A stretch of DNA of 41,788 nucleotides from NCBI GenBank assembly GCA_004431415.1, contig QPMI01000363.1, positions 1 through 41,788 on the forward strand, read 5' to 3'. The first letter of the stretch is position 1, and every line of letters begins with the position of its first letter. The notes beneath the pieces were generated by a model that saw nothing but the letters and a program-made list of their open reading frames with translations, was not told the origin of the DNA and did not search any database. This DNA is from Cyanophora paradoxa CCMP329 (taxonomy: Eukaryota > Plantae > Glaucophyta). The position numbers and the translations under genes are program-made. Of the stretch, positions 8,297 to 35,600 are shown in pieces.

Positions 8297-8307
8297 TATA
8301 CAAGAAT

Positions 8308-12545: not shown

Positions 12546-12725
12546 TGGGACTTGGCAAAGGCTGCGCTACCTCCGTACGACCCGGGTGCGCCTCATCCCG
12601 CCCGCCCAATCGCGGAGTCCCCTCGGAGGCACTTGCAGACTGAACGAGAATTAATTATCGATGAAATCAAAAAGTTGCTTTCTCGCAATCTTATTCGTCC
12701 TATTTTGTACACTGATTGCAGAGCT
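12546..12725 (+). pseudogene. Second Ty3/Gypsy pol fragment: pre-RT segment fused in frame to the RNase H 'ILYTDC' motif (RT deleted)
   Basis: AKAALPPYDPGAPHP-ARPIAESPRRHLQTERELIIDEIKKLLSRNLIRP|ILYTDC is homologous to 10480-10582. Bases 12700-12720 are identical to 8402-8422. Confidence 0.85.
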
Positions 12726-15700
12726 TGCTGGTGGGAGGGTCATCTGCCTAAGGCTAGCGCCTTGTGCATATTCCCCCAGAGAGATTTGGAGTGCATCTGT
12801 CTTCTATTTTCTGGCAGATTGGAAACCTGGGGCCTTGGACTGAGTAATTTGCTGGTGGGTGGGTCATCTGCGTAATGCTAGCCCCTTTTGCATATTCCTC
12901 CATAGATATTTGGAGTGCATCTGTCTTCTATTTTCTGGCAGATTGGAAACCTAGGGCCTTCGAATGAGTGACTTGCTGGTGGGTGGGTGATCTGCGTAAG
13001 GCTAGCGCCTTGTGTATATTCCCCCAGAGAGATTTGGAGTGCATCTGTCTTCTATTTTCTGGCAGATTGGAAACCTGGGGCCTTGGACTGTGTGACTTGC
13101 TGGTGGGTGGGTCATCTGCGTAAGGCTAGCGCCTTGTGCATATTCCCCCAGAGAGATTTGGAGTGCATCTGTCTTCTATTTTCTGGCAGATTGGAAACCT
13201 GGGGCCTTGGACTGTGTGACTTGCTGGTGGGTGGGTCATCTGCGTAAGGCTAGCGCCTTGTGCATATTCCCCTAAAGAGATTTGAGATGCATCTGTCTTT
13301 TTTGTGGCAGATCCCAAACCTCCAGCCTGTAATTGAGTGACTTGCTGGTGGGTGGGGCATCTGTATTTTCTGGCGACTTGCTAGCGCCTTGTGCATATTC
13401 CCCCAGAGAGATTTGGGGTGCATCTTTCTTCTTTTTTGTCACAGATCCGAAACCTGCTGCCTTCGACTGATTGACTTGCTGGTGGGTGGGTTCATCTTCC
13501 TTAGGCTAGCGCCTTGTGCATTTTCCCCCGGAGAGATTTGGGAAGCATCCATCTTCTATTTCTTGACAGATCAGAAACCTGGGGCCTCCAACTGAGTGAT
13601 TTGCCGGTGGGTAGGCCATCTGCCTAAGGCTAGCGCCTTGTGCATATTCCCCCAGAGAGATTTGGGGTGCATCCTTCTTCTATTGTGTGGCAGATCAGAA
13701 ACCTGGGGCCTTTGTCTGAGTGGCTTGCTGGTGGGTGGGTTCATCTTCCTCAGGCTAGCGCCTTGTGCATATTCCCCCAGAGAGATTTGGGGTGCATCTT
13801 TCTTCTTTCTTGTCACAGATTAGAAACCTGCTGCCTTCAACTGATTGACTTGCTGGTGGGTGGGTTCATCTTTCTAAGGCTAGCGCCTTGTGCATATTCC
13901 CCCAGAGAGATTTGGGAAGCATCCATCTTCTATTTCTTGACAGATCGAAACCTGGGGCCTCCAATTGAGTGGCTTGCTGGTGGGTGGGTTCATCTTTCTA
14001 AGGCCAGCGCCTTGTGCATATTCCCCCAGAGAGATTTGGGGTGCATCCTTCTTCTATTGTGTGGCAGATCAGAAACCTGGGGCCTTTGTCTGAGTGGCTT
14101 GCTGGTGGGTGGGTTCATCTTCCTCAGGCTAGCGCCTTGTGCATATTCCCCCAGAGAGATTTGGGGTGCATCTTTCTTCTTTCTTGTCACAGATTAGAAA
14201 CCTGCTGCCTTCAACTGATTGACTTGCTGGTGGGTGGGTTCATCTTTCTAAGGCTAGCGCCTTTTGCATATTCCCCCAGAGAGATTTGGGGTGCATCTTT
14301 CTTGTATTTTCTGGCGACTTGCTAGCGCCTTGTGCATATTCCCCCAGAGAGATTTGGGGTGCATCTGTCTTTTTTGTGGCAGATCCCAAACCTCCAGCCT
14401 GTAATTGAGTGACTTGCTGGTGGGTGGGGCATCTGCCGAAGGCTAGCGCCTTGTGCATATTCCCCTAAAGAGATTTCGGATGCATCTGTCTTTTTTGTGG
14501 CAGATCCCAAACCTCCAGCCTGTAACTGAGTGACTTGCTGGTGGGTGGGGCATCTGCCTAAGGCCAGCGCCATGTGCATATTTCCCCAGAGAGTTTTTGG
14601 GTGCATCTTGCTTCTATTTTCTGGCAGATTGGAAACCTGGGGCCTTCGACTTAGTGACTTGCTGGTGGGTGGGTCATCTGCCTACGGCTAGCTCCTTGTG
14701 CATATTCCCCCAGAGAGATTTGGGGTGCATCTGTCTTCTATTTTGTGGCAGATTGGAAACCTGGGGCCTTGGACTGAGTGACTTGCTGGTGGGTGGGTCA
14801 TCTGCCTAAGACTAGCCCCTTTTGCATATTCCTCCAGAGATATTTGGAGTGCATCTGTCTTCTATTTTCTGGCAGATTGGAAACCTAGGGGCTTTGAATG
14901 AGTGACTTGCTGGTGGGTGGGTCATCTGCGTAAGGCTAGCGCCTTGTGCATATTCCCCCAGAGAGATTTGGAGTGCATCTGTCTTCTATTTTCTGGCAGA
15001 TTGCAAACCTAGGGCCTTGGACTGAGTGACTTGCTGGTGGGTGGGTCATCTGCCTAAGGCTAGGTCCTTGTGCAGATTCCCCCAGAGAGATTTGGGGTGC
15101 ATCTGTCTTCTATTTTGTGGCAGATCAGAAACCTGGGGCCTTTGACTGAGTGGTTTGCTGGTGGGTGGGTCCTCTGCCTACGGCTAGCGCCTTGTGCATA
15201 TTCCCCCAGAGAGATTTGGAGTGCATCTGTCTTCTATTTTCTGGCAGATTGGAAACCTGGGGCCTTGGACTGAGTGACTTGCTGGTGGGAGGGTCATCTG
15301 CCTAAGGCTAGCGCCTTGTGCATATTCCCCCAGAGAGATTTGGAGTGCATCTGTCTTCTATTTTCTGGCAGATTGGAAACCTGGGGCCTTGGACTGAGTA
15401 ATTTGCTGGTGGGTGGGTCATCTGCGTAATGCTAGCCCCTTTTGCATATTCCTCCATAGATATTTGGAGTGCATCTGTCTTCTATTTTCTGGCAGATTGG
15501 AAACCTAGGGCCTTCGAATGAGTGACTTGCTGGTGGGTGGGTGATCTGCGTAAGGCTAGCGCCTTGTGTATATTCCCCCAGAGAGATTTGGAGTGCATCT
15601 GTCTTCTATTTTCTGGCAGATTGGAAACCTGGGGCCTTGGACTGTGTGACTTGCTGGTGGGTGGGTCATCTGCGTAAGGCTAGCGCCTTGTGCATATTCC

Positions 15701-18700
15701 CCTAGAGAGATTTGAGATGCATCTGTCTTTTTTGTGGCAGATCCCAAACCTCCAGCCTGTAATTGAGTGACTTGCTGGTGGGTGGGGCATCTGCCGAAGG
15801 CTAGCGCCTTGTGCATATTCCCCTAAAGAGATTTCGGATGCATCTGTCTTTTTTGTGGCAGATCCCAAACCTCCAGCCTGTAACTGAGTGACTTGCTGGT
15901 GGGTGGGGCATCTGCCTAAGGCCAGCGCCATGTGCATATTTCCCCAGAGAGTTTTTGGGTGCATCTTGCTTCTATTTTCTGGCAGATTGGAAACCTGGGG
16001 CCTTCGACTTAGTGACTTGCTGGTGGGTGGGTCATCTGCCTACGGCTAGCTCCTTGTGCATATTCCCCCAGAGAGATATGGGGTGCATCTGTCTTCTATT
16101 TTGTGGCAGATTGGAAACCTGGGGCCTTGGACTGAGTGACTTGCTGGTGGGTGGGTCATCTGCCTAAGACTAGCCCCTTTTGCATATTCCTCCAGAGATA
16201 TTTGGAGTGCATCTGTCTTCTATTTTCTGGCAGATTGGAAACCTAGGGGCTTTGAATGAGTGACTTGCTGGTGGGTGGGTCATCTGTGTAAGACTAGCGC
16301 CTTGTGCATATTCCCCCAGAGAGATTTGGAGTGCATCTGTCTTCTATTTTCTGGCAGATTGCAAACCTAGGGCCTTGGACTGAGTGACTTGCTGATGGGT
16401 GGGTCATCTGCCTAAGGCTAGGTCCTTGTGCAGATTCCCCCAGAGAGATTTGGGGTGCATCTGTCTTCTATTTTGTGGCGGATCAGAAACCTGGGGCCTT
16501 TGACTGAGTGGTTTGCTGGTGGGTGGGTCCTCTGCCTACGGCTAGCGCCTTGTGCATATTCCCCCAGAGAGATTTGGAGTGCATCTGTCTTCTATTTTCT
16601 GGCAGATTGGAAACCTGGGGCCTTGGACTGAGTGACTTGCTGGTGGGAGGGTCATCTGCCTAAGGCTAGCGCCTTGTGCATATTCCCCCAGAGAGATTTG
16701 GAGTGCATCTGTCTTCTATTTTCTGGCAGATTGGAAACCTGGGGCCTTGGACTGAGTAACTTGCTGGTGGGTGGGTCATCTGCTTAAGACTAGCCCCTTT
16801 TGCATATTCCTCCATAGATATTTGGAGTGCATCTGTCTTCTATTTTCTGGCAGATTGGAAACCTAGGGCCTTCGAATGAGTGACTTGCTGGTGGGTGGGT
16901 GATCTGCGTAAGGCTAGCGCCTTGTGCATATTCCCCCAGAGAGATTTGGAGTGCATCTGTCTTCTATTTTCTGGCAGATTGGAAACCTGGGGCCTTGGAC
17001 TGTGTGACTTGCTGGTGGGTGGGTCATCTGCGTAAGGCTAGCGCCTTGTGCATATTCCCCCAGAGAGATTTGGAGTGCATCTGTCTTCTATTTTCTGGCA
17101 GATTGGAAACCTGGGGCCTTGGACTGAGTGACTTGCTGGTGGGTGGGTCATCTGCCTAAGACTAGCCCCTTTTGCATATTCCTCCAGAGATATTTGGAGT
17201 GCATCTGTCTTCTATTTTCTGGCAGATTGGAAACCTAGGGCCTTCGAATGAGTGACTTGCTGGTGGGTGGGTCATCTGCGTAAGGCTAGCGCCTTGTGCA
17301 TATTCCCCCAGAGAGATTTGGAGTGCATCTGTCTTCTATTTTCTGGCAGATTGGAAACCTGGGGCCTTGGACTGTGTGACTTGCTGGTGGGTGGGTCATC
17401 TGCGTAAGGCTAGCGCCTTGTGCATATTCCCCCAGAGAGATTCGGAGTGCATCTGTCTTCTATTTTCTGGCAGATTGGAAACCTGGGGCCTTGGACTGAG
17501 TAACTTGCTGGTGGGTGGGTCATCTGCCTAAGGCTAGGTCCTTGTGCAGATTCCCCCAGAGAGATTTGGAGTGCATCTGTCTTCTATTTTCTGGCAGATT
17601 GGAAACCTAGGGCCTTCGAATGAGTGACTTGCTGGTGGGTGGGTGATCTGCGTAAGGCTAGCGCCTTGTGCATATTCCCCCAGAGAGATTTGGAGTGCAT
17701 CTGTCTTCTATTTTCTGGCAGATTGGAAACCTGGGGCCTTGGACTGTGTGACTTGCTGGTGGGTGGGTCATCTGCGTAAGGCTAGCGCCTTGTGCATATT
17801 CCCCTAGAGAGATTTGAGATGCATCTGTCTTTTTTGTGGCAGATCCCAAACCTCCAGCCTGTAATTGAGTGACTTGCTGGTGGGTGGGGCATCTGTATTT
17901 TCTGGCGACTTGCTAGCGCCTTGTGCATATTCCCCCAGAGAGATTTGGGGTGCATCTTTCTTCTTTTTTGTCACAGATCCGAAACCTGCTGCCTTCGACT
18001 GATTGACTTGCTGGTGGGTGGGTTCATCTTCCTTAGGCTAGCGCCTTGTGCATTTTCCCCCGGAGAGATTTAAGAAGCATCCATCTTCTATTTCTTGACA
18101 GATCAGAAACCTGGGGCCTCCAACTGAGTGATTTGCCGGTGGGTAGGCCATCTGCCTAAGGCTAGCGCCTTGTGCATATTCCCCCAGAGAGATTTGGGGT
18201 GCACCCTTCTTCTATTGTGTGGCAGATCAGAAACCTGGGGCCTTTGTCTGAGTGGCTTGCTGGTGGGTGGGTTCATCTTCCTCAGGCTAGCGCCTTGTGC
18301 ATATTCCCCCAGAGACATTTGGGGTGCATCTTTCTTCTTTCTTGTCACAGATTAGAAACCTGCTGCCTTCAACTGATTGACTTGCTGGTGGGTGGGTTCA
18401 TCTTCCTAAGGCTAGCGCCTTGTGCATATTCCCCCAGAGAGATTTGGGAAGCATCCATCTTCTATTTCTTGACAGATTGAAACCTGGGGCCTCCAATTGA
18501 GTGGCTTGCTGGTGGGTGGGTTCATCTTCCTAAGGCCAGCGCCTTGTGCATATTCCCCCAGAGAGATTTGGGGTGCATCTTTCTTCTATTTTATCACAGA
18601 TCAGAAACCTGCGGCCTTCGACTGAGTGATTTGCCAGTGGGTAGACCATCTGCCTAAGGCTAGCGCCTTGTGCATATTCCCCCAGAGAGATTTGGGGTGC

Positions 18701-21304
18701 ATCTTTCTTGTATTTTCTGGCGACTTGCTAGCGCCTTGTGCATATTCCCCCAGAGAGATTTGGGGTGCATCTTTCTTCTTTTTTGTCACAGATCAGAAAC
18801 CTGCTGCCTTCGACTGATTGACTTGCTGGTGGTTGAGTTCATCTTCCTAAGGCTAGTGCCTTGTGCATATTCCCCTGGAGAGATTTGGGAAGCATCCATC
18901 ATCTATTTCTTGACAGATCAGAAACCTGGGGCCTCCAACTGAGTGATTTGCCGGTGGATAGGCCATCTGCCTAAGGCTAGCGCCTTGTGCATTTTCCCCC
19001 GGAGAGATTTGGGAAGCATCCATCTTCTATTTCTTGACAGATCAGAAACCTGGGGCCTCCAACTGAGTGGCTTGCTGGTGGGTGGGTTCATCTTCCTAAG
19101 GCCAGCGCCTTGTGCATATTCCCCCAGAGAGATTTGGGGTGCATCTTTCTTCTATTTTATCACAGATCAGAAACCTGCGGCCTTCGACTGAGTGATTTGC
19201 CAGTGGGTAGTCCATCTGCCGAAGGCTAGCGCCTCTGTGCATATTCCTCCAGAGAGATTTGGGGTGCATCCTTCTATTTTGTGGCAGATCAGAAACCTCG
19301 GGCCTTCGACTGAGTGACTTGCTGGTGGGTGGGTTCATCTTCCTAAGGCCAGCGCCTTGTGCATATTGCGCCAGAGAGGTTTGGGGTGCATCTTTCTTCT
19401 TTTTGTCACAGATCAGAAACCTGCGGTCTTCGACTGAGTGATTTGCCAGTGGGTAGGCCATCTGCCTAAGGCTAGCGCCTTGTGCATTTTCCCCCAGAGA
19501 GATTTGGGGTGCATCTTTCTTGTATTTTCTGGCGACTTGCTCGCTCCTTGTGCATATTCCCCCAGAGAGATTTGGTGTGCATCTTTCTTCTGTTTTGTCA
19601 CAGATCAGAAAGCTGCGGCCTTCGACTGATTGACTTGCTGGTGGTTGGGTTCATCTTCCTAAGGCTAGCGCCTTGTGCATATTCCCCCGGAGAGATTTGG
19701 GAAGCATCCATCTTCTTTTTTTTGACAGATCAGAAACCTGGGGCCTCCAACTGAGTGATTTGCCCGCGGATAGGCAATCTGCCTAAGGCTAGCGCCTTGT
19801 GCATTTTCCCCTAGAGAGATTTTGGGTGCATCCTTCTTCTATTTTGTGGCAGATCAGAAACCTCGGGCCTTTGACTGAGTGGCTTGCTGGTGGGTGGGTT
19901 CATCTTCCTAAGGCCAGCGCCTTGTGTATATTCCCCGAGAGAGATTTGGGGTGCATCTTTCTTCTATTGTATCACAGATCAGAAAACTGGGGCCTTCGAC
20001 TGAGTGATTTGCCAGTGGGTAGGCCATCTGCCTAAGGCAAGCGCCTTGTGCATATTCCCCCAGAGAGATTTGGGGTGCATCTTTCTTGTATTTTCTGGCG
20101 ACTTGCTAGCGCCTTGTGCATATTCCCCCAGAGAGATGAGGGGTGCTTCTTTCTTCTATCTTGTCACAGATCAGACACCTGCCGCCTTCGACTTAGTGAT
20201 TTGCCGGTAGTAAGGCCAGCTGCCTAAGTCTAGCGCCTTGTGCATATTCCCCCAGAGAGATTTGGGATGCATCCATCTTCTATTTAGTGGCAGATCGGAA
20301 ACATGGGGCCTTTGACTGAGTGATTTGCTGGTATACTCTTCTTCTTTTTGCTGGTGGCTGTGTTCATCTTCCTAAGGCTAGTGCCTTGTGCATATTCCCC
20401 CAGACAGATTTGGGGTGCATCTTTCTTGTATTTTCTGGCGACTTGCTAGAGCCTTGTTCATATTCCCCCAGAGAAATTTGGGGTGCATTTGTCTTCAATT
20501 TTGTGGTGGATCGGAAACCTGCAGCCTTCCACTATTGCCTTGCTGGTGGGTGGGTTCAACTTCCTAAGGCTAGCGCCTTGTGCATATTCCCCCAGAGAGA
20601 TTTGGGAAGCATCCATCTTCTTTTTTTTGACAGATCAGAAACCTGGGACCTCCGACTGAGTGACTTGCTGTTGGGTGGGTTCATCTGCCTAAGGCTAGCG
20701 CCCTGTGCATATTCCCCCAGAGAGATTTGGGGTGCATCCTTCTTCTATTTTGTGGCAGATCAGAAACCTGGAGCCTTTGACTGAGTGACTTGCTGGTGGG
20801 TGGGTCATCTGCCTAAGGCTAGTGCCTTGTGTGCATATTTCCCCAGAGAGTGTTTGGGTGCATCTTTTTTCTATTTTCTGGCAGATTGGAAACCTGGGGC
20901 CTTCGACTTAGTGACTTGCTGGTGGGTGGGTCATCTGCGTAAGGCTAACGCCTTGTGCATATTCCCCCAGAGAGATTTGGGAAGCATCCATCTTCTTTTT
21001 TTTGACAGATCAGAAACCTGGGACCTCCGACTGAGTGACTTGCCGGTGGGTAGGCCATCTGCCTAAGCCTAGCGCCTTGTGCACATTCCCCCAGAGAGAT
21101 TTGGGGTGCATCTTTCTTCTTTTTTGTGGCAGATCAGAAACCTTGGGCCTTTGACTGAGTAGCTTGCTGGTGGGTGGGTTCATCTTCCTAAGGCCAGCGC
21201 CTTGTGCATATTCCCCCAGAGAGATTTAGGGTGCATCTTTCTTCTATTTTGTGGCAGATCGGAAACCCCTTAACTGAGTGACTTGCTGGTGGGTGGGTCA
21301 TCTG
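12724..21304 (+). repeat. Satellite B array, left domain (124-bp, 121-bp and ~76-bp deletion monomers; HORs)
   Basis: Unit GACTTGCTGGTGGGTGGGTCATCTGCCTAAGGCTAGCGCCTTGTGCATATTCCCCCAGAGAGATTTGG... with period 124 (13081 to 13205). Block duplications occur at offsets 374, 1358 and 4532. Divergence rises toward 18500-21300. Confidence 0.98.
20324..20355 (+). mobile_element. Extremely 5'-truncated (14 nt) copy of the LINE 3' end with 9-bp TSD
   Basis: TTTGCTGGT-[ATACTCTTCTTCTT]-TTTGCTGGT. The insert at 20333-20346 is identical to LINE 31424-31437. Confidence 0.8.
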
Positions 21305-22535
21305 TGGGGATATGCACAAGGCGCTAGCCTTTGGAAGATGAACCCACCCACCAGCAAACCACTCAGTCAAAGGCCCCAGGTTTCTGATCCGCAACAAAAT
21401 AGAAGAAGGATGCACCCCTCATCTCTCTGGGGGAAGATGCAAAAGGTGTTAGCGTTAGGCAGATGGCCTACCCATCAGCAAGTCACTCAGTTACAGGCTG
21501 GACGTTTGGGATCTGCCAAAAAGACAGATGCATCCCAAATCTCTCTAGGGGAATATGCACAAGGCGCTAGCCTTAGGCAGATGACCCTCCCAAAAGCAAG
21601 TCACTCAATTACAGGCTGGAGGTTTGGGATCTGCCACAAAAAAGACAGATGCATCCCAAATCTCTCTGGGGGAATATGCACAAGGCGCTAGCATTAGGCA
21701 GATGACCCACCCACCAGCAAGTCACTCAGTCCAAGGCCCCAGGTTTCCAATCTGCCAGAAAATAGAAGAAAGATGCACTTCAAATCTCTCTAGGGGAATA
21801 TGCAGAAGGCGCTAGCCTTAGGCAGATGACCCACCCACCAGCAAGTCACTCATTCGAAGGCCCTAGGTTTCCAATCTGCCAGAAAATAGAAGAAAGATGC
21901 GCCCCAAATATCTCTCGAGGAATATGCAAAAGGGGCTAGCCTTAGGCAGATGACCCACCCACCAGCAAGTCACTCAGTCCAAGGCCCCAGGTTTCCAATC
22001 TGCCAGAAAATAGAAGACAGATGCACTCCAAATCTCTCTGGGGGAATATGCACAAGGCGCTAGCCTTAGGCAGATGACCCACCCACCAGCAAGTCACTCA
22101 GTTACAGGCTGGAGGTTTGGGATCTGCCACAAAAAAGACAGATGCATCCCAAATCTCTCTAGGGGAATATGCACAAGGCGCTAGCCTTAGGCAGATGCCC
22201 CACCCACCAGCAAGTCACTCATTTGAAGGCCCTAGGTTTCCAATCTGCCAGAAAATAGAAGAAAGATGGGCCCCAAATATCTCTGGAGGAATATGCAAAA
22301 GGGGCTAGCCTTAGGCAGATGACCCACCCACCAGCAAGTCACTCAGTCGAAGGCCCCAGGTTTCCAATCTGCCAGAAAATAGAAGACAGATGAACTCCAA
22401 ATCTCTCTGGGCGAATATGCAAAAGGGGCTAGCCTTAGGCAGATGACCCACCCACCAGCAAGTCACTCAGTTACAGGCTGGAGGTTTGGGATCTGCCACA
22501 AAAAAGACAGATGCATCCCAAATCTCTCTGGGGAA
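21305..22535 (-). repeat. Satellite B, inverted block, left of LINE
   Basis: Orientation flips at ...GTCATCTG|TGGGGATATGCACAAGG. Reverse-complement 121/124 monomers follow. Confidence 0.97.
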
Positions 22536-22632
22536 CCCCCCCGGATCTGGCGAGGCACGCAGCAGCACAGCAGCAGCAGCGCGGAGCGTGGTGCGCACTT
22601 ATTCTTATCTTATGCGTCGTTCTGAGACTCTC

Positions 22633-22691
22633 CTGCCCTTGGGCACCTACAATCTGCCGCAAGGCACCTATTCCTGCCCTTCGGGCACCTA
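22633..22691 (+). promoter_or_regulatory. Three tandem mini-hairpins CTGCC-loop-GGCACCTA in the LINE 5'UTR
   Basis: TGCC-CTTG-GGCA, TGCC-GCAA-GGCA and TGCC-CTTCG-GGCA, each followed by CCTA, at a 20-21 nt period. Confidence 0.6.
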
Positions 22692-22732
22692 TCCGTACAG
22701 CCTCGCTTGATCTACGAGCCACTGCGCATCGC

Positions 22733-25303
22733 ATGACGCGTTTTCCGCTTGCGTCACCGCGCGCTCCTGACCGCTACTCTGCGCTGGCAGTTCTGACCGT
22801 TATGGCCGACGAAGACTGGTCTTCCTTGCAGCAAGGCGCATCGTCTGGCGGACGCAATAAGACTGAGCGAACTCATTTTATGTCGTTCTGGCACAAGCCC
22901 GATCGTTCTGCGAGGCGTCATTCTGTGTTTGCTGCTCCGGCCGCGGAGAGGCACCTTCTTGGTCAGGAGCTCAATCATGCCTCGGGAGTGCCGACTCAGC
23001 TTCGCTTCCGCTTCCCATTGGATCCTGCCAGGGCGCGAATCACTGAACCTGATGATGTGCGCAAGGTCCAAGGTTCCTATCGTTCAAAGGAGATGATTTC
23101 TCGTGCTCGGGAACTCTCACGGCACATTCAGCGCCCCGGCACTCCTGGCATCTCGCTTGACCCCAAACTGAACCCTGACAAGAACACTCTGGACGTCACT
23201 GTCGATTTTCACTCCCCAGACCATGGCGTCCTTCAATCCTACTCGGCTTTTTATGGCACCTTCGACAAACTTACAGAACTTTTCCCTACCATAGTCTCAG
23301 ACCTCTATCCCCGTGGACACCGCTATAAGCTGTTCCTCCACCATCAGACTGTGACTGATTTTGTTCGGGCCAATTCTGTTGCTGGTGTCCCTTCCTCGGT
23401 CCCAGCCCTTGCTTCTAGCTGGTCATCAAAGCCAGGAGAGCCTGAGCCCCACGTCCTTCTTGATCTGTCCATCAACCTTCCTCCCTTGGCGAAGCCCGAC
23501 CACCCATTCTTCTCAGCAGCCTCGATGGAATCTGATGAGTTCATCCGAACTGTCCTTGTCTCTATTCAGGATGCCTTGTCCCAGCCGAATGGTGTACTGG
23601 TCTCCAGTGACTCTCCCACAAACTTGCATCTTGACACCCTCCTTGACCGTATTCGGCTTCGTGAGACCAATCCTGACACTAGCCTTGGCGACCATGTTGT
23701 GATCCTTCCTTTCTCTGACCCGGCCCCAACTATTCTCTGTGCTGTGGCTGCTCACAAACTTGAGGGCTTCCGTCTTAAACACAAGGGTGTCGCGTATGAC
23801 CGACGTCTGCATCCGAACAATGACTACAACTTTACTGTGAAATGTGAGCCTGAGGTGGCGCCTTTCCCGGAAATTGTGCATGGTGGAGACTATCGCGTGG
23901 CAAACCGAGCTATCTGCCCGATCATGCTAATTGTGTCTGTCCCACGGTCGAACTTTTTAGTCCGCCATGTCCTCTCTCGTGACAAGGACTACCCTTTTGG
24001 CAATAATGGCATCAAATCTGTCATCTTTCCTGTTGAGGATTCCCTGCTGGCCTTCAATCTCAACTTCTTGGATGCTGACTACCCCTCTGTTTTGTACAAC
24101 ATCTCTCAAGCTCGGACTGGTGCCTCTGTGCCTGAGGCTGTTGCGGAGCCGTGCAATTACACTCCTTTCTACTCGTGCCGACCTGAATGTGAATTCCATG
24201 ATAAGTCGTTCTGTCTTATCCCGGCCAAGGATGATCAGTCTTTCTTTTATCATGTCAACCGTGATCCCGTCATCTATCACCTGCCAATGAGCCTGCGGAA
24301 TGAGATTCTTGCCTTCCACGGTGATGAATCTGCTCTTGCCTCGGCTCTCCCTCCGGTGCTCATACTCATGCTCTCTCTATTTCGGCCTCTCTCTTTCGTA
24401 ACCTCTTTTCCTTATGTTGTACTCTTGCAGAATGACCCTCGTGATCGTATGCCAGCTGCCCGACCTGCAGCAGCTCCTGCTTCATCAGCCTTACCGCGGC
24501 CTGCCCTGTCTGCTTCTGCTGCCCAGACCAAAGGAGCCCCTCCTCGCCCTCCTGCTCCTGTGCCGTCCGTGTCTGCTGTGCAGCCAGCTCCAGCTCCGGC
24601 TCCTGCCCCATCTGCTGGCTCGCCTCCGGATCCCATGCTGCTTGCAGTTGTTAAAGCCTTTGACCCCGCTCAACTTGCTGTTCTGGCTGCCACCAACCCT
24701 CCTATTGCACACTTCTTGATGACCTACGGTCACCTGGTTTCCGCGTACTCTTCTTCTTCTTCCGCTGCCCCGGTGTCATCTGGTCCTGCTGCCCCCTTGT
24801 CTGCCGCTTCGCCTGCTGGCTCGCGTGACGTCCCCAAGCGCACTCGTGACTCCGACCTCGAGCCCACTGCCTCTGAGTTGCCTGATGCTCCTCCCTCTCT
24901 GGCACCCCCGCAAAAGACGCAAGTGACAGCTGCAAACTCCATGCTTCCGCGCCCTTTGCAAGTCCCTGCAACCTCTCCTGCTCGGTCTGTCCTCTCTTGT
25001 GCTTTTGCTCTCCCCCCCCTGACTTTACCTACTGCTCTCTCAGTAAAAGTGGTCAGATTAAACCTGCGAAGCCCTCTGGTTCGGCAGCTGAGACCCAAAG
25101 TGATTCCATTGAAATTCGCAGCTACTATGCAGCCCTTGTCAACCAGCCACAGAAGTAGCCTTTTAACTGCACATGATCTTATTTTGAATTTTCCCCTGGC
25201 TTCCAATTGCAATGTACCTCCCTTGCCTCGTTGCCCACTGCTTGCTGAGCCGAGCCCCACAGACCAGATCCGTCCCTTGCGTGCACCCCCGTGGCCTGAT
25301 TAA
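22733..25303 (+). CDS. LINE ORF1 protein (~830-860 aa), no recognisable canonical domain, Pro/Ala/Ser-rich C-terminal third
   Basis: Long intact ORF ending 2 nt before the ORF2 ATG. The first element-internal ATGs are at 22733 and 22802. The track's 22511 ATG lies in the flanking satellite. Confidence 0.85.
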   Translation: MTRFPLASPRAPDRYSALAVLTVMADEDWSSLQQGASSGGRNKTERTHFMSFWHKPDRSARRHSVFAAPAAERHLLGQELNHASGVPTQLRFRFPLDPARARITEPDDVRKVQGSYRSKEMISRARELSRHIQRPGTPGISLDPKLNPDKNTLDVTVDFHSPDHGVLQSYSAFYGTFDKLTELFPTIVSDLYPRGHRYKLFLHHQTVTDFVRANSVAGVPSSVPALASSWSSKPGEPEPHVLLDLSINLPPLAKPDHPFFSAASMESDEFIRTVLVSIQDALSQPNGVLVSSDSPTNLHLDTLLDRIRLRETNPDTSLGDHVVILPFSDPAPTILCAVAAHKLEGFRLKHKGVAYDRRLHPNNDYNFTVKCEPEVAPFPEIVHGGDYRVANRAICPIMLIVSVPRSNFLVRHVLSRDKDYPFGNNGIKSVIFPVEDSLLAFNLNFLDADYPSVLYNISQARTGASVPEAVAEPCNYTPFYSCRPECEFHDKSFCLIPAKDDQSFFYHVNRDPVIYHLPMSLRNEILAFHGDESALASALPPVLILMLSLFRPLSFVTSFPYVVLLQNDPRDRMPAARPAAAPASSALPRPALSASAAQTKGAPPRPPAPVPSVSAVQPAPAPAPAPSAGSPPDPMLLAVVKAFDPAQLAVLAATNPPIAHFLMTYGHLVSAYSSSSSAAPVSSGPAAPLSAASPAGSRDVPKRTRDSDLEPTASELPDAPPSLAPPQKTQVTAANSMLPRPLQVPATSPARSVLSCAFALPPLTLPTALSVKVVRLNLRSPLVRQLRPKVIPLKFAATMQPLSTSHRSSLLTAHDLILNFPLASNCNVPPLPRCPLLAEPSPTDQIRPLRAPPWPD

Positions 25304-25305
25304 AT

Positions 25306-28300
25306 ATGGTTAACATTGCATCAACAAATGTGGGCGGGCTCAATAGTCCCAGCAAGCTGCAGAACTTTGTGGAACGTTGCAGGAAGTTTGCCGTTGCTCA
25401 CAAGATAGACATTCTCTGCTTACAGGAAACTAAGTTACGGGAATTTGATGACGCTGGTCACCCTTTGGGAAAACTTGCAAAGATTGCCGCTGCCTGGCGA
25501 GGCCTGTTCTTCCACTCTGCTCCTACTCAATCCCGCTCCACTGGTGTTGCCATAATGGTCACGCCCTTCTTTGCTGCACAGCACGAGGTTACACTTGCTC
25601 GTCAGGACTCTGATGGACATTTTATTTCGGTCTCTGTTGCGTACAAGGCGTCGGGTTCCTTCCCTGCTACGACTGTACTCTTGGCTTGCGTCTATGCTCC
25701 TGCTAGTGATAACCGGGACCGCCGTGAATGGTGGCAATCTTGTGTGCAGGCTGGGTATCTCTCCACCACTTTGCCTATGCTTCTTATCGGAGACTGGAAT
25801 CACCGCACCCCAAAATCTAATTCCCTGCAGCGCTCGTACCTTCACACAACGATGACTTCCCACCAGCTTGATGATCTTGCGAACCATGCTCCGCCGCCTC
25901 CTGCCGGCGGGACTGCTTCAGCTTTTGCCCCAACTTATTCGCGTATTGTTAGCCTTAAAGCTGTAAACTCGCGCCTCGACTTTGCTCTTGCAACCCAGTG
26001 GTTCCAGCGTCGCCTTGCCACGTACTCGCTCCTAGCGCCATCTGATCCACTCCACCTCCAGCTCGATCATCGTATTCTTGTTCTCTCTTTTTCGGGCCCT
26101 CGTGTGCACCGTCACTTGCCCCGGTCCCGCGTGCAAGTGTTCCCGTACGATTTCGTCAGCAATCTGCCGGGACAGTATTCTCAGCGCGGCAATCCAGTCT
26201 GCCTCGACCCTGCTCTGCGCAAACGCACGGAAACGCACTTGACCCAATTCCTGAGCACTATCCTTCAAGCGCGCGATGAAGGCGAGGTAGTTACGGATGC
26301 TGCTGCCTTTGATGACACATGGTGCTCGTTCTCCAAGCGGCTCTGCAAGATGGCGCGTAAGCACAGAGCACATGTGATTAGCAAGCTTTACATGCATGAG
26401 CGCGGGGCGTTCAAAGCGCTGGGCGACGTCGAGATGAAGATCTACCGCCTGCCGCACGGATGAGCACTATCATTCAAGCACGTGGTGAAGGCGAGGTAGT
26501 TACGGATGCTGCTGTCTTCGACGATACTTGGCGCGTATTCTGTTAGCGGCTCTGCAAGATGGCACGTAAGCACAGAGCGCACGTGATTAGCAAGCTTTAC
26601 ACGAATGAGAGCGCGGCGTACAAAGCGCTGGGCGACGTTGAAATGAAGATCTACCGCTTGCCACCCGGCTCCGATGCTGTCGCGCTGTACCGCGAGCGCA
26701 CCCAGCGGCTTGAATCCCTGCGCGAACTTCAGAAGAAGGTCTCTCTCAGCAATCGCCAGCTTGCCAGGCTTCAGCACCGGCTTACATTCGAAAGCGGCTC
26801 TAAGCGTGACTGGGCGCGGCTCGCCAAGCCCTCCTCCATTGTCCCCCCGCCGCTGCACTTCACCTCGGATGGTCCCACTGTTATCACTGTTGAGCCTGGC
26901 GCGGTTGCAAACTATTTGGCTAGAAAGCTTGTAGAACTGGGCGCTCCTACCCCTGCTTTCCTGTTGACTCGGACCTCTATCCTCGACGCTCTCTGCCCCC
27001 CTCCTGAACCCCCCGAGGACCCTACTCGGGGGGATAATCCCCCTTCCCGAGGACCCTATCCCCCTTCCGGCGTCTCCGGATAATCCCTCCGCTGCTGCTT
27101 TCATTCAACAATTTGTGGACGATATCTTGCCCCATGTTCAGGGGACTGTCCCGCCTGTTTGGCACACTCAGACTAATATCTCTCCTGACGACGTAGCGTT
27201 CTCTATCAGTAAAGCGTATGCCCATGGGGCACCAGGTCCTGATGGAATTCCTGTTGGCATTTTTAAGATGCACACAAAGCCCTGGTCTGTTTTCCTGGCT
27301 GCCTACTTTCAAAAGATCGCCGTTCAAGGCTTCCTTCCTGACTTTATGCGCGACTTGACCTACACTTTCATCTGGAAGCGGTCAGGCTTGCCCACTGATG
27401 CTTCGAAATACCGACCTATTGGAGTTTCTAACACACTCTTGCGCTTGTTCGAACGGACTATGGTCACAGTAGCCAATCCGATCTTACAACTCATCATTCC
27501 TGAAGATCAGTTCGGTTTCGTGCAAGGTCGGGACGTTCATAAAAATATCTTTGCAGTGCTGGCAACGTATACACGCATCCGCTACGCCAATTATGACTGT
27601 GTTATCAGGTTTGACTCTGATCTGAAGTCTGCGTACGATCTCTTGCTTTGGGTTATTATGGCGCTTGTTCTCCATGTTCAACAGTGGCCCTGGCTTATCC
27701 GGCGAATGCACCACTGCCTGTACAACTCCAGAGCCCCCCTCCGTGCACGTGTATTTGCGAATGGGCTATTCTCTTCTGTGTTCTCACGTCTTGTGGGCAC
27801 CATTCAAGGTGGTCCCTGGAGCCCGGTTTCCTTCATTCTCTCGATCAGCCCTCTACGTTCTCTCTTGCTCTCACTCACTGATATACCCCGCCCTGTTGGC
27901 ACCCCCCTTGTCCAGTTTGCTGATGATATTTATCAGCTATTCCTGCTCCGCGCCCAGGGGCTATCTCTGCATGACTCCCTCTTAGCAATCCATGCACATT
28001 TCGGCTCTTTTAAACCTTTCTCTGGTCAGCATCTCTCTATGGAGAAATCTCTTGCTATTGTTCTGAGGGAACCTGCTGCCTCTCCATTGGATCTCGATCC
28101 GGCCGATCCCTTGCCATTCCCTGTTCTCCGCGTCGCTGAGCTTGATCCTGCTTGTCATAAGCAGCTCGGTTTCCCTCATCAGCTCCTTCTGGATCGCGAG
28201 CACCATCCGTCTTGGAACATGATTCGACATAAAGCAACCTTCTTTATGGAGACAGCTGTCGATTTCCAGTCGTCCCTTCTTGGACGTGGTCGCATCGCCT

Positions 28301-31170
28301 ATGCTTTTTGTCAGGGGGTCTTAAGCTTTTACATCCGTGCGGTTCCAGCACCTCCTAAGATCCTCCGGGCTATTTCAAAGAATTTACAGACCTTTGTCTG
28401 GAAACGTTCTTCAAATTCCGATGCGTTCATCTTACCCCATCAGGGCATGACCACTGCTTTGTGTCGACCTGTATCTCTCGGCGGTCTCGGAGCGCCCTCC
28501 CCCGAACACTTCCAGCTCGCCTTTGCCGCAAACTCTTTGGAATCGTGGCTTGCTTCCCCGGCATCTTTTCCTGGTCGAGAAATTATTGAGGCGTTCACGG
28601 AAAACGGTGGCTTTGGGCTCTGGCTTCCTTTTCTCAACAGGACTGATTGCTTGGTTAAGCCTTTGTGGCCTCCACCTGCTGACCCATTCTTTGCCATCTT
28701 CGACGCTTGGCGGACTATTTTCGATGTCAAGAAACCACGCTGCGCTTGGGATTTCCTGCGTATGCCGATCATGCACCCTTGGTATAAGAAAGACACATAC
28801 TATGAGCGTGATTTCACTTTCACGTTGCTCTTCCGTCTCGGCTTCCGTTTCAACTATCAAATCTGGGACTTCTCTGGGGAACATACTCTCTATGTCGAGC
28901 CCTCCTATCCCGAGCAACTGCGCGACCAGCTGCATGCGCTCAATAATCGACTTGCACAAGAGGTCTGGCGCTGTGGTTGCACTGCAGACTGGAAACACGA
29001 ACCTGGAGGTCTCGCTATTGGCCCTTTTTCGAAACTTGCTGCTGAACGCGTCTCACTTCAGGGCGTAGCTCTCTGTCGCGTTCGCCTTCTTCCTGACACA
29101 CAGCTCGCTTTCCATGAGATTGATGTGCCCTGCAGTACTTTGCTTGACAGTCCCGTTGCCCTCCCCGATGTACTTGCAATCCGGCCCGCGGCCCGTGCGA
29201 TCGACTTCATTCCCGTGCCTGCACATGCGCTTAGCCTTGTTAAGAATGCTTGCAAGTTGTCCCCCATGCCTGCACTCGTCCGGTTCCTCATGAACTCGTT
29301 ACAGCTTTCCGACCTTGCACTCCGTCCGCTGCCTCCGTCGTCTTCCCGTACGTTTGCGTTCCACTCTGACCGTGAGAACATCAATGATCGCTCAAAGGAA
29401 GAGCTGCGCCTCTCTAAGTCGGTTGCGTACAAGCTGCCTGCTGCCCCGTCGCGTTTCACGGTTCACAACATGTACAAGTACCTTTCCTCCCACGCTTTCA
29501 TGGCGCCGACGACCGCTGAGACTAAGTGGCGTGCTGATCTCTCCCCAAAGTTCCTCTGGCCGCCGGGCTACGATGCGCGCACTGATCGCTTTCCCTGGTT
29601 CAACACGGTGATTCCCGACCTCCGCTATGCTCTCACGCAGCGCGTCCTTGACGGCTACTTTGCACTGCGCTACAACGCTCTTCGCACATCGTCCCGCATC
29701 GCTGATATGGCTGCGCGCTCTGATCTTCAGCGTCCTGCTTCGGCAAATTTGCTTGACAGTGAGCTCCTCTCCTCGCTATGTCCGGTCTGCCACCGGCGCT
29801 GCAATGCGCTGCACGTTTTCGTTCTCTGCCCTGTTGTGCAGCAATTTTGGTCGCTCATCTTCCATGCCCTGCAGCTCCAACCGATGCCCATTCCTTCCGC
29901 TCGCTTTGTTGCCTGGTTGCTTACTGGCTCGGTCCGTTTTGCTGACAGCTGGATGTTCTTGCAGAACTGGGAGTGGCAGGTTGTTCGGATTCTTGGATTG
30001 CACGTCATTTTCCGCTCGTATTGTCTGGCCTATCGAGCAGGTCGCACTGAAGCTGCGGCCACGTTTGCAATGGACCCTAACACACAGCTGCCCCTTACAC
30101 CTTCCTCCAAGACGGGCTTGAAGGCCGCTACTCTGATGACTGCCTTGTTCCGCGAACTGGACGATTTCATGGACATGCTTCCTCGCCGTTTACCTCGATT
30201 TAAAGTCACCTATGTCCGTGGGTATATCCGTTTCATCTCTACTGCTGACCCCTCTCATTCTTCATTCTACGCTAATCTTTTAGACGCTGCTCGTACTTAT
30301 GACCATTCCCTAGCCTCTTATGAGCACTGTGAACATATTGCTCAGCCTGCCCCTAGCCCCGATCTAGCCCCTAGCCCCCTTGTGGCTCAGTTTCCTTATG
30401 CCAGTGCGCGGCCTGTCCTGCTGCAGCGTCTTGAAAAGGAGGATCTTGAAGGCTATATGTACCCTCCTGACAACGGCTCAGACTCCTCTGACCTTTCCGA
30501 CCTTGGCCCTGATGATCCTGATAATTCCTCCAGTAGTACCTCACCGGATGATGACGACCCCCCTGGTGGACCCGACCCTGCCCCTGACCCTGGTCCTGTG
30601 GCTCACTCACCCCCTCACCCGCTGCCACCTCACCCGCCGCCCGATATTGACTCGGAGGATGAGCCGCCTCTTCAACGCCGTCTTGTTGGTGCTTCAGCGT
30701 TTGGTCTTGATGCTGCTATAGATGATACAGGTTCACCTCCGCCCTCTCCTCAAGTTATCATCTATGTGGATGACACTGAGCTTGCCCCTGATCTGCTGCC
30801 GATCTCTCCTATCCGAATCGACGCTGTTGCTGTTGAGCCCGACTTCACGAGTCATGCTGCCATTGCTTCCCCAGCTCCTCCCTCTTCTGCCCCTCTGCCG
30901 TCTTCTGCGCCTATGACGCCCATGGATACTGATCCTCTTTCTCCTTTTATTGTCCCGCCTAAGCGTCGTCGAGTGTCTTCTCCAGACCCTGGTGCTCTGG
31001 ATCATGGTGATTACATTCCTGGTGTCCCACCTCAGGTTTCTTTCAAACGCTTGCGGCCTTCACCTCCCCCAACTCTCCCATCCGCTGCCCCTATGGATCT
31101 CGCTGATGACCCAGGTTCCCCAATGGTGCTTATCTCTGACGAAGAGGCTGATGACATGACTGATGGCTGA
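25306..31170 (+). pseudogene. LINE ORF2 (APE endonuclease - reverse transcriptase - CCHC - acidic/Pro-rich tail), interrupted by two lesions; reconstructs to ~1873 aa
   Basis: APE motifs: STNVGGL, LQETK, GVAI, VYAP, IGDWN, SRLD, LDH. RT motifs: APGPDG, YRPI, QFGFVQGR, DLKSAYD, GTIQGGPWSP, FADD, GGLG. Zinc finger CPVC-x7-H-x4-C at ~29779-29829. Removing a 209-bp duplication and a 34-bp insertion joins 25306-26463, 26559-27083 and 27115-31170 into one frame. Confidence 0.95.
26252..26669 (+). repeat. 209-bp diverged tandem duplication within ORF2
   Basis: Copies start with TGAGCACTATC at 26252 and 26461. There are about 30 differences by manual count (~86% identity). The duplication creates TGA at 26461 and a frameshift. 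Confidence 0.95.
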
Positions 31171-31439
31171 AGGTTTCACACGTGAGGTCGTGACCAGGAC
31201 TCCCCCAGGCCAGCATTAGGAAGAGGCCCGCATTGGGATGTCTGTGGTTGTTTTCCGTGTCTGCGTGTATGAGCGCCGGACCGCCAGGGCATACATGGCA
31301 GACCGTAAGGCGTTTGCGCCGCCACTACCCTTGTCTGGTTGGTTCACTGTCGATTGTGCTTCGGGCCTTCGGGTCCTTCGCCTTTCGTCAAAACCGCACA
31401 ACCGGCTTGGGCATGTCTTATACATACTCTTCTTCTTCT
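31171..31439 (+). other. LINE 3'UTR with stem-loops and (TTC)n tail
   Basis: Stem GTCTGCGTGTATG (31259-31271) pairs with CATACATGGCAGAC (31290-31303). A GGGCC-TTCG-GGTCC hairpin sits inside a TTGTGC/GCACAA stem. The tail is CTCTTCTTCTTCTT with no poly(A). Confidence 0.75.
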
Positions 31440-32595
31440 TCTGGGGAAATATGCACAAGGCGCTAGCCTTAGGCAGATGACCCACCCACCAGCAAGTCAC
31501 TCATTCAAAGGCCCTAGGTTTCCAATCTGCCAGAAAATAGAAGAAAGATGCACCCCGAATCTCCCTGGGGGAATATGCACAAGGCGCTAGCCTTAGGCAG
31601 ATGAAACCACCCACCAGCAAGTCACTCCGTCGAAGGCCCCAGGTTTCCAATCTGCCAGAAAATAGAAAACAGATGCACTCCAAATCTCTCTGGGGGAATA
31701 TGCACAAGGCGCTAGCCTTAGGCAGATGACCCACCCACCAGCAAGTCACTCAGTCGAAGGCCACAGGTTTCCGATCCGCCAGAAAATAAAAGAAAGATGC
31801 ACCCCAAATCTCTATGGGGAAATATGCACAAGGCGCTAGCCTTAGGCAGATGACCCACCCACCACCAAGTCACTCAGTCGAAGGCCCCAGGTTTCCGATC
31901 TGCCACAAAAAAGAAGAAGGATGCACCCCAAATCTCTCTGGGGGAATATGCACAAGGAGCTAGCCGTAGGCAGATGACCCACCCACCAGTAAGTCACTGA
32001 GTCAAAGGCCCCAGGTTTCCAATCTGCCAGAAAATAGAAGAAAGATGCACCCAAAAACTCTCTGGGGAAATATGCACAAGGCGCTAGCCTTAGGCAGATG
32101 ACCCACCCACCAGCAAGTCACTCAGTCGAAGGCCACAGGTTTCCGATCCGCCAGAAAATAAAAGAAAGATGCACCCCAAATCTCTATGGGGAAATATGCA
32201 CAAGGCGCTAGCCTTAGGCAGATGACCCACCCACCACCAAGTCACTCAGTCGAAGGCCCCAGGTTTCCGATCTGCCACAAAAAAGAAGAAGGATGCACCC
32301 CAAATCTCTCTGGGGAAATATGCACAAGGAGCTAGCCGTAGGCAGATGACCCACCCACCAGTAAGTCACTGAGTCAAAGGCCCCAGGTTTCCAATCTGCC
32401 AGAAAATAGAAGAAAGATGCACCCAAAAACTCTCTGGGGAAATATGCACAAGGCGCTAGCCTTAGGCAGATGACCCACCCACCAGCAAGTCACTCAGTCA
32501 AAGGCCCCAGGTTTCCAATCTGCCAGAAATAGAAAAAGGATGCACTTCAAATCTCTCTGGGGGAATATGCACAAGGCGCTAGCCTTAGGCAGATG
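31440..32595 (-). repeat. Satellite B, inverted block, right of LINE (124-type only; 372-bp trimer duplication)
   Basis: Reverse-complement monomers. Identical ORF-track peptides occur at 31842 and 32214 (offset 372). Confidence 0.97.
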
Positions 32596-32631
32596 GGTGG
32601 GTGCAGATAGCCTAAGGGAATATGCACAAGG

Positions 32632-35600
32632 GACTTGCTGGTGGGTGGGTCATCTGCCTAAGGCTAGCGCCTTGTGCATATTCCCCTAGAGAGATTTGGG
32701 ATGCATCTGTGTTCTATTTTCTGGCAGATTGGAACCCTGGGGCCTTCGAACGAGTGACTTGCTGGTGGGTGGATCATCTGCCTAAGGCTAGCGCCTTGTG
32801 CATATTCCCCTAGAGAGATTTGGGATGCATCTGTCTTTTTTGTGGCAGATCCCAAACCTCCAGCCTGTAACTGAGTGACTTGCTGGTGGGTGGGTCATCT
32901 GCCTAAGGCTAGCCCCTTTTGCATATTCCTCCAGAGATATTTGGGGCCCATCTTTCTTCTATTTTCTGGCAGATTGGAAACCTAGGGCCTTCAAATGAGT
33001 GACTTGCTGGTGGGTGGGGCATCTGCCTAAGGCTAGCGCCTTGTGCATATTCCCCTAGAGAGATTTGGGATGCATCTGTCTTTTTTGTGGCAGATCCCAA
33101 ACCTCCAGCCTGTAACTGAGTGACTTGCTGGTGGGTGGGTCATCTGCCTAAGGCTAGCGCCTTGTGCATATTCCCCCAGAGAGATTTGGAGTGCATCTGT
33201 CTTCTATTTTCTGGCAGATTGGAAACCTGGGGCCTTGGACTGAGTGACTTGCTGGTGGGTGGGTCATCTCCCTAAGGCTAGCGCCTTGTGCATATTCCTC
33301 CAGAGAGATTTGGGATGCATCTGTCTTTTTTGTGGCAGATCCCAAACCTCCAGCCTGTAACGGAGTGACTTGCTCGTGGGTGGGTCATCTGCCTAAGGCT
33401 AGCGCCTTGTGCATATTTTCCTAGAGAGATTTGGAATGCATCTGTGTTCTATTTTCTGGCAGATTGGCCTTCGAACGAGTGACTTGCTGGTGGGTGGATC
33501 ATCTCCCTAAGGCTAGCGCCTTGTGCATATTCCCCTAGAGAGATTTGGGATGCATCTGTCTTTTTTGTGGCAGATCCCAAACCTCCAGCCTGAACTGAGT
33601 GACTTGCTGGTGGGTGGGTCATCTGCCTAAGGCTAGCGCCTTGTGCATATTCCCCCAGAGAGATTTGGAGTGCATCTGTCTTCTATTTTCTGGCAGATTG
33701 GAAACCTGGGGCCTTGGACTGAGTGACTTGCTGGTGGGTGGGTCATCTGCCTAAGGCTAGCGCCTTGTGCATATTCCCCTAGAGAGATTTGGGATGCATC
33801 TGTCTTTTTTGTGGCAGATCCCAAACCTCCAGCCTGTAATTGAGTGACTTGCTGGTGGGTGGGTCATCTGCCTAAGGCTAGCGCCTTGTGCATATTCCCC
33901 TAGAGAGATTTTGGATGCATCTGTCTTTTTGTGGCAGATCCCAAACCTCCAGCCTGTAACTGAGTGACTTGCTGGTGGGTGGGTCATCTGCCTAAGGCTA
34001 GCGCCTTGTGCATATTCCCCAGAGATATTTGGGTCGCATCTTCTTCTATTTTCTGGCAGATTGGAAACCTAGGGCCTTCGAATGAGTGACTTGCTGGTGG
34101 GTGGGTCATCTGCCTAAGGCTAGCGCCTTGTGCATATTCCCCTAGAGAGATTTGGGATGCATCTGTCTTTTTTGTGGCAGATCCCAAACCTCCAGCCTGT
34201 ATCGGAGTGACTTGCTGGTGGGTGGGTCATCTCCCTAAGGCTAGCGCCTTGTGCATATTCCCCTAGAGAGATTTGGGATGCATCTGTGTTCTATTTTCTG
34301 GCAGATTGGAACACTGGGGCCTTCGAACGAGTGACTTGCTGGTGGGTGGATCATCTCCCTAAGGCTAGCGCCTTGTGCATATTCCCCTAGAGAGATTTGG
34401 GATGCATCTGTCTTTTTTGTGGCAGATCCCAAACCTCCAGCCTGTAACTGAGTGACTTGCTGGTGGGTGGGTCATCTGCCTAAGGCTAGCCCCTTTTGCA
34501 TATTCCCCTAGAGAGATTTGGAGTGCATCTGTGTTCTATTTTCTGGCAGATTGGAAACCTAGGGCCTTCAAATGAGTGACTTGCTGGTGGGTGGGTCATC
34601 TCCCTAAGGCTAGCGCCTTGTGCATATTCCCCTAGAGAGATTTGGGATGCATCTGTCTTTTTTGTGGCAGATCCCAAACCTCCAGCCTGGAACTGAGTGA
34701 CTTGCTGGTGGGTGGGTCATCTGCCTAAGGCTAGCCCCTTTTGCATATTCCTCCAGAGAGATTTGGAGTGCATCTGTCTTCTATTTTCTGGCAGATTGGA
34801 AACCTAGGGCCTTCAAATGAGTGACTTGCTGGTGGGTGGGCATCTGCCTAAGGCTAGCGCCTTGTGCATATTCCCCTAGAGAGATTTGGGATGCATCTGT
34901 CTTTTTGTGGCAGATCCCAAACCTCCAGCCTGTAACTGAGTGACTTGCTGGTGGGTGGGTCATCTGCCTAAGGCTAGCGCCTTGTGCATATTCCCCAGAG
35001 AGATTTGGAGTGCATCTGTCTTCTATTTTCTGGCAGATTGGAAACCTGGGGCCTTGGACTGAGTGACTTGCTGGTGGGTGGGTCATCTGCCTAAGGCTAG
35101 CGCCTTGTGCATATTCCCCTAGAGAGATTTGGGATGCATCTGTCTTTTTTGTGGCAGATCCCAAACCTCCAGCCTGTAACTGAGTGACTTGCTGGTGGGT
35201 GGGTCATCTGCCTAAGGCTAGCGCCTTGTGCATATTCCTCCAGAGATATTTGGGGCGCATCTTGCTTCTATTTTCTGGCAGATTGGAAACCTAGGGCCTT
35301 CGAATGAGTGACTTGCTGGTGGGTGGGTCATCTGCCTAAGGCTAGCGCCTTGTGCATATTCCCCTAGAGAGATTTGGGATGCATCTGTCTTTTTTGTGGC
35401 AGATCCCAAACCTCCAGCCTGTATGAGTGACTTGCTGGTGGGTGGGTCATCTCCCTAAGGCTAGCGCCTTGTGCATATTCCCCTAGAGAGATTTGGGATG
35501 CATCTGTCTTTTTTGTGGCAGATCCCAAACCTCCAGCCTGTATCGGAGTGACTTGCTGGTGGGTGGGTCATCTGCCTAAGGCTAGCGCCTTGTGCATATT

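Follow-up and report, generated by a model that had tools for sequence, protein, structure and literature searches.

A disabled copy of a divergent LINE and a 14-nt insertion with a matching 3′ terminus in one satellite array of Cyanophora paradoxa

Introduction

Some long interspersed nuclear elements (LINEs) end in a short repeat, as the I factor does with its (TAA)n tail and CR1-type elements with their octamer repeats, and L1 insertions that consist of poly(A) only, flanked by duplications, are also known. Other LINEs have been connected with repetitive DNA. Enrichment of G2/Jockey-3 of Drosophila in putatively centromeric repeat DNA was shown genome-wide, with CENP-A data (PMC6516634), Zepp and ZeppL of green algae are enriched genome-wide, with ZeppL forming clusters of its own copies (PMC9940879), and Koshi, an element of the Tx1 group, inserts into (TTC)n microsatellites (PMC3812793). 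Here we describe a LINE from the glaucophyte Cyanophora paradoxa CCMP329, together with a 14-nt insertion that matches its 3′ terminus exactly and lies 2,190 bp upstream of it. Both were found in a stretch of 41,788 nucleotides (GenBank assembly GCA_004431415.1, contig QPMI01000363.1, positions 1 to 41,788 of the forward strand), hereafter the window, most of which is satellite DNA. A literature search found no description of Cyanophora satellites or LINEs. The explanation that we favour, and that we consider probable, is that the window holds a recent but disabled copy of a very divergent LINE family and a second, independent insertion from an RNA with the same 3′ end, the two occurring together in one satellite without targeting being shown.

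Results

Two insertions with 9-bp duplications in the same satellite

Both insertions interrupt a satellite with a 124-bp monomer (SatB), and the features that define them are the following, in coordinates of the window:

12724-41788: SatB satellite overall, 124-bp monomer
12724..21300, + strand: SatB array of forward polarity, 124-bp monomer, hosts the mini-insertion
20324..20332, + strand: duplication of the mini-insertion, left copy, 9 bp, TTTGCTGGT, identical to 20347-20355
20333..20346, + strand: mini-insertion ATAC(TCT)3T, ATACTCTTCTTCTT, 14 nt, exact match to the LINE terminus at 31424-31437
20347..20355, + strand: duplication of the mini-insertion, right copy, TTTGCTGGT
21301..32595, - strand: SatB block of reversed polarity, hosts the LINE, with 1,235 bp to its left and 1,156 bp to its right
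22527..22535, + strand: target-site duplication of the LINE, left copy, 9 bp, TCTGGGGAA, identical to 31440-31448
22536..31439, + strand: LINE, 8,904 bp, with 5′ untranslated region (UTR), open reading frame (ORF) 1, broken ORF2, 3′ UTR and (TCT)n tail
31171..31427, + strand: 3′ UTR ending in ATAC
31428..31439, + strand: (TCT)4 tail, alternatively read as (TTC)n
31440..31448, + strand: target-site duplication of the LINE, right copy, TCTGGGGAA

The large insertion has no terminal repeats and carries a 3′ tail and a target-site duplication. Its 3′ terminus reads ATAC(TCT)4 and, because TC(T) is common to the tail and the duplication, the true length of the duplication is 7-9 bp. When the insert and one copy of the duplication were removed, the resulting empty site aligned with the monomer consensus and showed no gap where the flanks join, placing the insertion at about positions 89-97 of the consensus monomer. 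The element is antisense to the forward monomer, since the block of satellite that hosts it is reversed. Its longest stop-free frame spans 1,400 codons, compared to a maximum of 308 in 200 shuffles. The sense strand is pyrimidine-rich (C 0.31, T 0.29, A 0.19 and G 0.22 in ORF1, and similar elsewhere in 22536-31439). Folding of the 3′ UTR was no better than that of shuffled sequences (z = 0.58), so that a recognition hairpin in this region finds no support.

The mini-insertion shows the same organization on a much smaller scale. Removal of the 14 nt and one duplication copy rebuilt a normal monomer, again gap-free at the junction with respect to the consensus, and located the insertion at about positions 12-21 of the consensus monomer, in sense orientation to the forward monomer. 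When approximately 165 SatB monomers and 58 monomers of a second satellite, SatA, were cut against their consensus, it was the sole foreign micro-insert of at least 5-6 nt, and none of the ∼58 SatA monomers carried such a scar. Exactly two occurrences of the 12-mer ATACTCTTCTTC were counted in the window, with a chance expectation of 0.11 when one mismatch is allowed.

Both inserts show the anatomy of target-primed reverse transcription, namely a 9-bp duplication, a (TCT)n tail, no terminal repeats and an empty site that is a normal piece of satellite. A previous reading of the sequence had described an 8.9-kb LINE in SatB, with an apurinic/apyrimidinic endonuclease (APE), a reverse transcriptase (RT), a 9-bp duplication and a (TTC)n tail, and a second insertion about 2.2 kb upstream, which has a 9-bp duplication of its own and differs from the first in monomer position and in orientation relative to the monomer. 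Both descriptions hold: the duplications are perfect, the Exo_endo_phos and RVT_1 domains are present, and the two empty sites rebuild monomers.

Coding regions of the LINE

The coding regions of the element and the two tandem duplications that interrupt them are as follows:

22733..25303, + strand: ORF1, first ATGs within the element at 22733 and 22802, stop at 25301-25303
25306..26463, + strand: ORF2 part 1, APE endonuclease and start of the linker (Exo_endo_phos)
26252..26669, + strand: 209-nt tandem duplication that shifts the ORF2 frame, copies at 26252-26460 and 26461-26669, 86% identical
26547..27083, + strand: linker segment, open only in frame 3 relative to the APE
26968..31170, + strand: ORF2 part 2, RT, long middle region, Cys-His motif and acidic tail (RVT_1)
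27012..27079, + strand: 34-nt tandem duplication that restores the APE frame, units beginning with CCCGAGGACCCTA at 27012 and 27046

The ATG of ORF2 lies 2 nt past the stop of ORF1. In its first part, Pfam recognized an Exo_endo_phos domain (1.5e-12, in 25306-26460), and the APE catalytic motifs QET, GDWN, RLD and LDH are present. In the second part, RVT_1 was found at 1.7e-11 (in 27115-31167) with an FADD motif, and among the 31 columns with a conservation of 85% or more across 60 reference RTs, the RT retains 24, ADD included. A Cys-His motif, C-x2-C-x7-H-x4-C, follows at residue 889, numbered from 27115. The protein ends in an acidic, Pro-rich tail of 250 residues with a nuclear localization signal (NLS)-like sequence, PPKRRRV. 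Within the 1,351-residue ORF, two PxVxI motifs (PQVII and PMVLI) are confined to this tail, and the counts of PxVxI and SUMO-interaction motifs in the tail were not significant (shuffle P = 0.076 for PxVxI). ORF2 would be about 1,900 residues long. With an endonuclease upstream of the RT, conserved RT motifs, a 3′ tail and a target-site duplication, the element is an APE-type LINE.

The frame of ORF1 is open from an ATG at 22511 that falls in the satellite, and for this reason the start is probably at 22733 or 22802. No Pfam domain was detected in ORF1, a word-based homology search found no homologue, and an Atlas feature search gave no usable match. The locus of P0019, the protein that matches the RT core most strongly, has an ORF1 of its own, to which that of the element is unrelated. 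As neither a Pfam match nor a homologue was found, no coiled coil with RNA recognition motif and C-terminal domain and no zinc knuckles, as in an L1-type ORF1, were recognized. The AlphaFold2 model of the ORF1 core, computed from the single sequence, had a mean pLDDT of 34 and was unusable. Pro, Ala and Ser are abundant over the final 290 residues of ORF1.

Lesions in ORF2

Stops occur in all three frames between the APE and the RT. The 209-nt duplication shifts the frame and carries a TAG at 26544 in its second copy, and the 34-nt duplication restores the APE frame, so that the first 34-nt unit encodes the peptide PEDP in frame 3 and the second encodes it in frame 1. An intron bridging the gap between APE and RT was considered and judged unnecessary, since the two tandem duplications explain both frame changes. 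Together they add 243 nt, or 81 codons (209 + 34), and consequently APE and RT are in-frame though the intervening stretch is out of frame. This 81-codon sum of the duplications (26252-27079) may be a coincidence or a failed compensation. Because of the two duplications and the stop between APE and RT, the large copy cannot make ORF2 protein. The earlier description of this 8,904-bp element, putatively complete at its 5′ end, as a full-length copy thus does not make it an intact one, given that ORF2 is broken.

The two copies of the 209-nt repeat differ at 7, 8 and 15 sites at codon positions 1, 2 and 3, respectively, and the change is synonymous in 14 of the 28 codons affected. The remaining ∼8 kb of the LINE are open. 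On account of the third-position bias and of the open state of the rest of the element, the 14% divergence between the copies is probably not decay in place. We infer that template switching or recombination between two diverged, selected elements is the likelier origin of the duplication, in which case the copy would have been dead on arrival.

Relationship to known LINE families

An exhaustive HMMER search with the RT against 1.84 billion representative proteins returned 5,975 matches, none of them below an E value of 1e-30, and identity of the RT core to the best matches was at most ∼30-34%. A word-based search with the RT gave matches of just 23-28% identity. Exact look-up of the four LINE ORFs among recorded proteins was empty, and no copy of the family was found in the protein collections. 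The named top RT matches came from frogs and a charophyte alga. Relatives of one RT match, P0026, include a fish protein annotated as LINE-1 reverse transcriptase as well as plant proteins that are annotated as LINE-1 or carry zf-RVT and RNase H domains, which are typical of plant L1.

In a tree of 61 RT cores, which contained no curated clade references, the terminal branch leading to the query measured 3.8 changes per site, which is five times the median, and its placement was unsupported. Among solved structures, the RT matched human L1 ORF2p best, with 45 bits, compared to 27 bits for R2. Seven of eight profiles built from L1-like groups scored the RT at 96-132 bits, and the remaining one, a two-member profile, at 48 bits. 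The same profiles gave 92-162 bits to a non-L1 (PF14529-type) group, higher than to the query. For the APE, the profiles of four L1-like groups gave scores of 38-56 bits and that of the non-L1 (PF14529-type, Jockey/CR1-type) group a score of 7 bits, and in the PDB it had no L1 endonuclease match at E < 1. Judged by the profile scores, the APE leans towards the L1 type. The tail is (TCT)4, not the poly(A) of the L1 clade.

The sequence-only reading had proposed an undescribed lineage, and this proposal is sustained by an ORF1 without relatives and by an RT on a long, unplaced branch with no more than ∼30-34% identity to any of the 1.84 billion representatives. Near-identity of the RT to a described family, which would have spoken against the proposal, was not found, the closest identity being again in that range. 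An affinity to L1 is upheld in part: the APE profiles and the ranking in the PDB lean towards L1, and the RT has no supported place within an L1-like group. Assignment to the Tx1 group finds no support: the target sequences differ, the 5′ side lacks (TTC)n, and the RT nests in no L1-like group. Instead of the one defined target sequence of Tx1 elements, the two events available involve two monomer positions, opposite polarities and different duplications. All in all, these results support a new, very divergent LINE lineage whose ORF1 is an orphan and whose tail consists of (TCT)n. From its sequence, the element is probably an APE-type LINE of a deep or fast-evolving L1-like lineage, with membership in the L1 clade itself unproven.

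The satellite environment

Satellite DNA makes up 87% of the window outside the LINE, and SatB alone 61%. In addition to the two SatB arrays that host the insertions, the window contains:

1-7124, with pieces up to 10158: SatA satellite, 147-bp monomer
32632..41788, + strand: SatB array of forward polarity, 121/124-bp variants

SatB changes polarity twice (21296-21345 and 32590-32640), so that the LINE lies near the centre of an 11.3-kb reversed block. On the left, this block joins its neighbour head-to-head through a single-copy loop of about 32 nt. On the right, pieces of 5-14 nt alternate in polarity and form a mosaic of the type expected from serial template switching. Shortened SatB monomers of 68 bp recur in the window, as does a 13-nt variant insert, TATTTTCTGGCGA; the variants lie at 14260, 18666, 19478, 20044 and 20384, and at 13364 and 17896. 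The recurrence of these variants indicates a higher-order repeat structure.

The 147-bp satellite is interrupted at 7125-8975 by 1.8 kb of a Ty3/gypsy pol gene. This fragment encodes an RT_RNaseH domain (3.7e-13) and the start of an integrase zinc domain, and contains an internal 146-bp duplication at 7992-8261. Between the two satellites lies an ORF of 447 residues (10804-12147) with a glycosyltransferase family 90 domain (1.1e-13), for which exact look-up in recorded proteins gave no match. Possible identities of this ORF are a host gene and a pseudogene, stranded amid repeat-rich DNA.

Discussion

The anatomy of the two insertions suggests how they could have been made. The endonuclease would have nicked the bottom strand where the left end of the duplication was to form, and the 3′ end freed in this way would read ...AGA for the LINE and ...AAA for the scar. 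By annealing to 2-3 nt of the RNA's (UCU)n tail, this end could then serve as the primer for copying, and top-strand cleavage would follow 9 nt further along in both cases. For the insert at 20333, the copying itself or the cDNA that was retained would have ended 5 nt into the 3′ UTR, leaving 14 nt as a case of extreme 5′ truncation. The nick does not appear to be specific to the monomer sequence, because the two targets share nothing beyond a T-rich start. The occurrence of both inserts in one satellite finds its simplest explanation in a satellite that dominates the region, tolerates insertions and exposes tiny scars, and a true insertion preference for the satellite is also possible.

Several points weigh against the explanation that we favour. 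The mini-insert holds just 5 letters that are not repeat, and a 13-mer look-alike, TACTCTTCTTCTT, is found inside the LINE near 24746; for these two reasons the mini-insert cannot be assigned to exactly this LINE family. What the scar shows is that an RNA with a LINE-like 3′ terminus was used, its source family not being proved. Two insertions of a rare-looking family within 2.2 kb would moreover be unlikely under uniform scatter unless there were thousands of scars, and this closeness leaves room for a real regional preference. In addition, a single copy of the LINE is at hand, and the lesions of ORF2 could be features of the family and not faults of the copy. The short match and the look-alike within the LINE would also suit an origin of the 14 nt in the repair of a staggered break, either as filler DNA copied from the end of the LINE or as a chance TTC-rich insert. 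We regard this origin as very improbable. The match coincides exactly with the terminus, tail included, the 9-bp duplication has the same length as that of the LINE, the scar site offers the same tail microhomology, and the 12-mer is rarely expected by chance. The short distance between the sites and the identity of the termini could alternatively reflect a nearby source RNA or ribonucleoprotein, or one burst of endonuclease activity, that struck the neighbourhood twice, the scar being an aborted attempt. Such a link has only a slim chance of being correct, as the resident copy cannot supply ORF2 protein and the relative ages of the two events are undated.

The sequence-only reading had favoured another view, in which the LINE family prefers satellite or heterochromatin by way of chromatin, not sequence; the recognition might involve the acidic, Pro-rich ORF2 tail with its PxVxI motifs and NLS-like sequence. 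In favour of this view, one array was hit twice independently at a distance of 2.2 kb, and the two insertions differ in monomer position and polarity and have duplications of equal length. In addition, PQVII and PMVLI are restricted to the tail, and centromere-enriched LINEs such as G2/Jockey-3 (PMC6516634) and ZeppL (PMC9940879) exist elsewhere. The composition of the window speaks against it. With satellite at 87% and SatB at 61% of the DNA outside the LINE, two inserts placed at random would both fall in SatB with a probability of ∼0.38. A 14-nt scar is recognizable only inside a repeat, because a consensus is required, and its detection is biased accordingly. Furthermore, SatA is free of scars, the motif count in the tail does not differ significantly from shuffles, and an element of another class, the Ty3/gypsy fragment, also lies in satellite DNA. 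Statistically, the window lends targeting no support, and it neither shows nor refutes regional targeting. We consider a preference of this kind possible but doubtful. Its more elaborate form, in which a deep-branching glaucophyte lineage integrates preferentially into satellite heterochromatin by reading chromatin through PxVxI or SUMO-interaction-like motifs of the ORF2 tail, seeding full copies and 14-nt scars, seems to us improbable. On balance we retain the explanation given at the outset, a disabled copy and an independent second insertion that share one satellite.

If homing to satellite chromatin without a sequence motif were true, the element would exemplify a LINE guided by chromatin, in a lineage whose mobile elements have barely been studied, and it would be useful for understanding the origin of centromere-associated retroelements. 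In either case, the scar demonstrates that reverse transcription at a nicked target can leave only 14 nt, with the caution that such scars are visible in repeats only.

With the L1 superfamily of human, fish, frog and plant, the LINE of the window shares the order ORF1, APE, RT and C-terminal Cys-His motif, as well as duplications and 5′-truncated copies. It differs in its (TCT)n tail in place of poly(A), in an ORF1 without L1-type domain, in an RT that scores below a non-L1 group on L1-like profiles, and in a predicted ORF2 length of ∼1,900 residues. The sense strand is A-rich in mammalian L1, whereas it is pyrimidine-rich here. The Tx1 group, with Koshi, likewise offers an L1-like APE element tied to tandem repeats and to a TTC motif. 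Koshi, however, sits within (TTC)n, whereas in our element TTC is its own 3′ tail only, and unlike in the Tx1 group the targets are two different positions of a 124-bp monomer. G2/Jockey-3 and Zepp/ZeppL are also non-LTR elements in repeat-dense DNA. Their enrichment was established genome-wide, in contrast to a LINE known from one window by sequence alone, and the clusters of its own copies that ZeppL forms contrast with the scattered satellite insertions seen here. A parallel in the mode of insertion is provided by LINEs with short-repeat tails, in which the repeat tail likewise primes on the nicked target through a microhomology of a few nucleotides, and by poly(A)-only L1 insertions, in which extreme 5′ truncation similarly leaves little beyond the tail. 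What sets the present case apart from these is that the unit is TCT/TTC and that the scar retains just 5 nt of the 3′ UTR.

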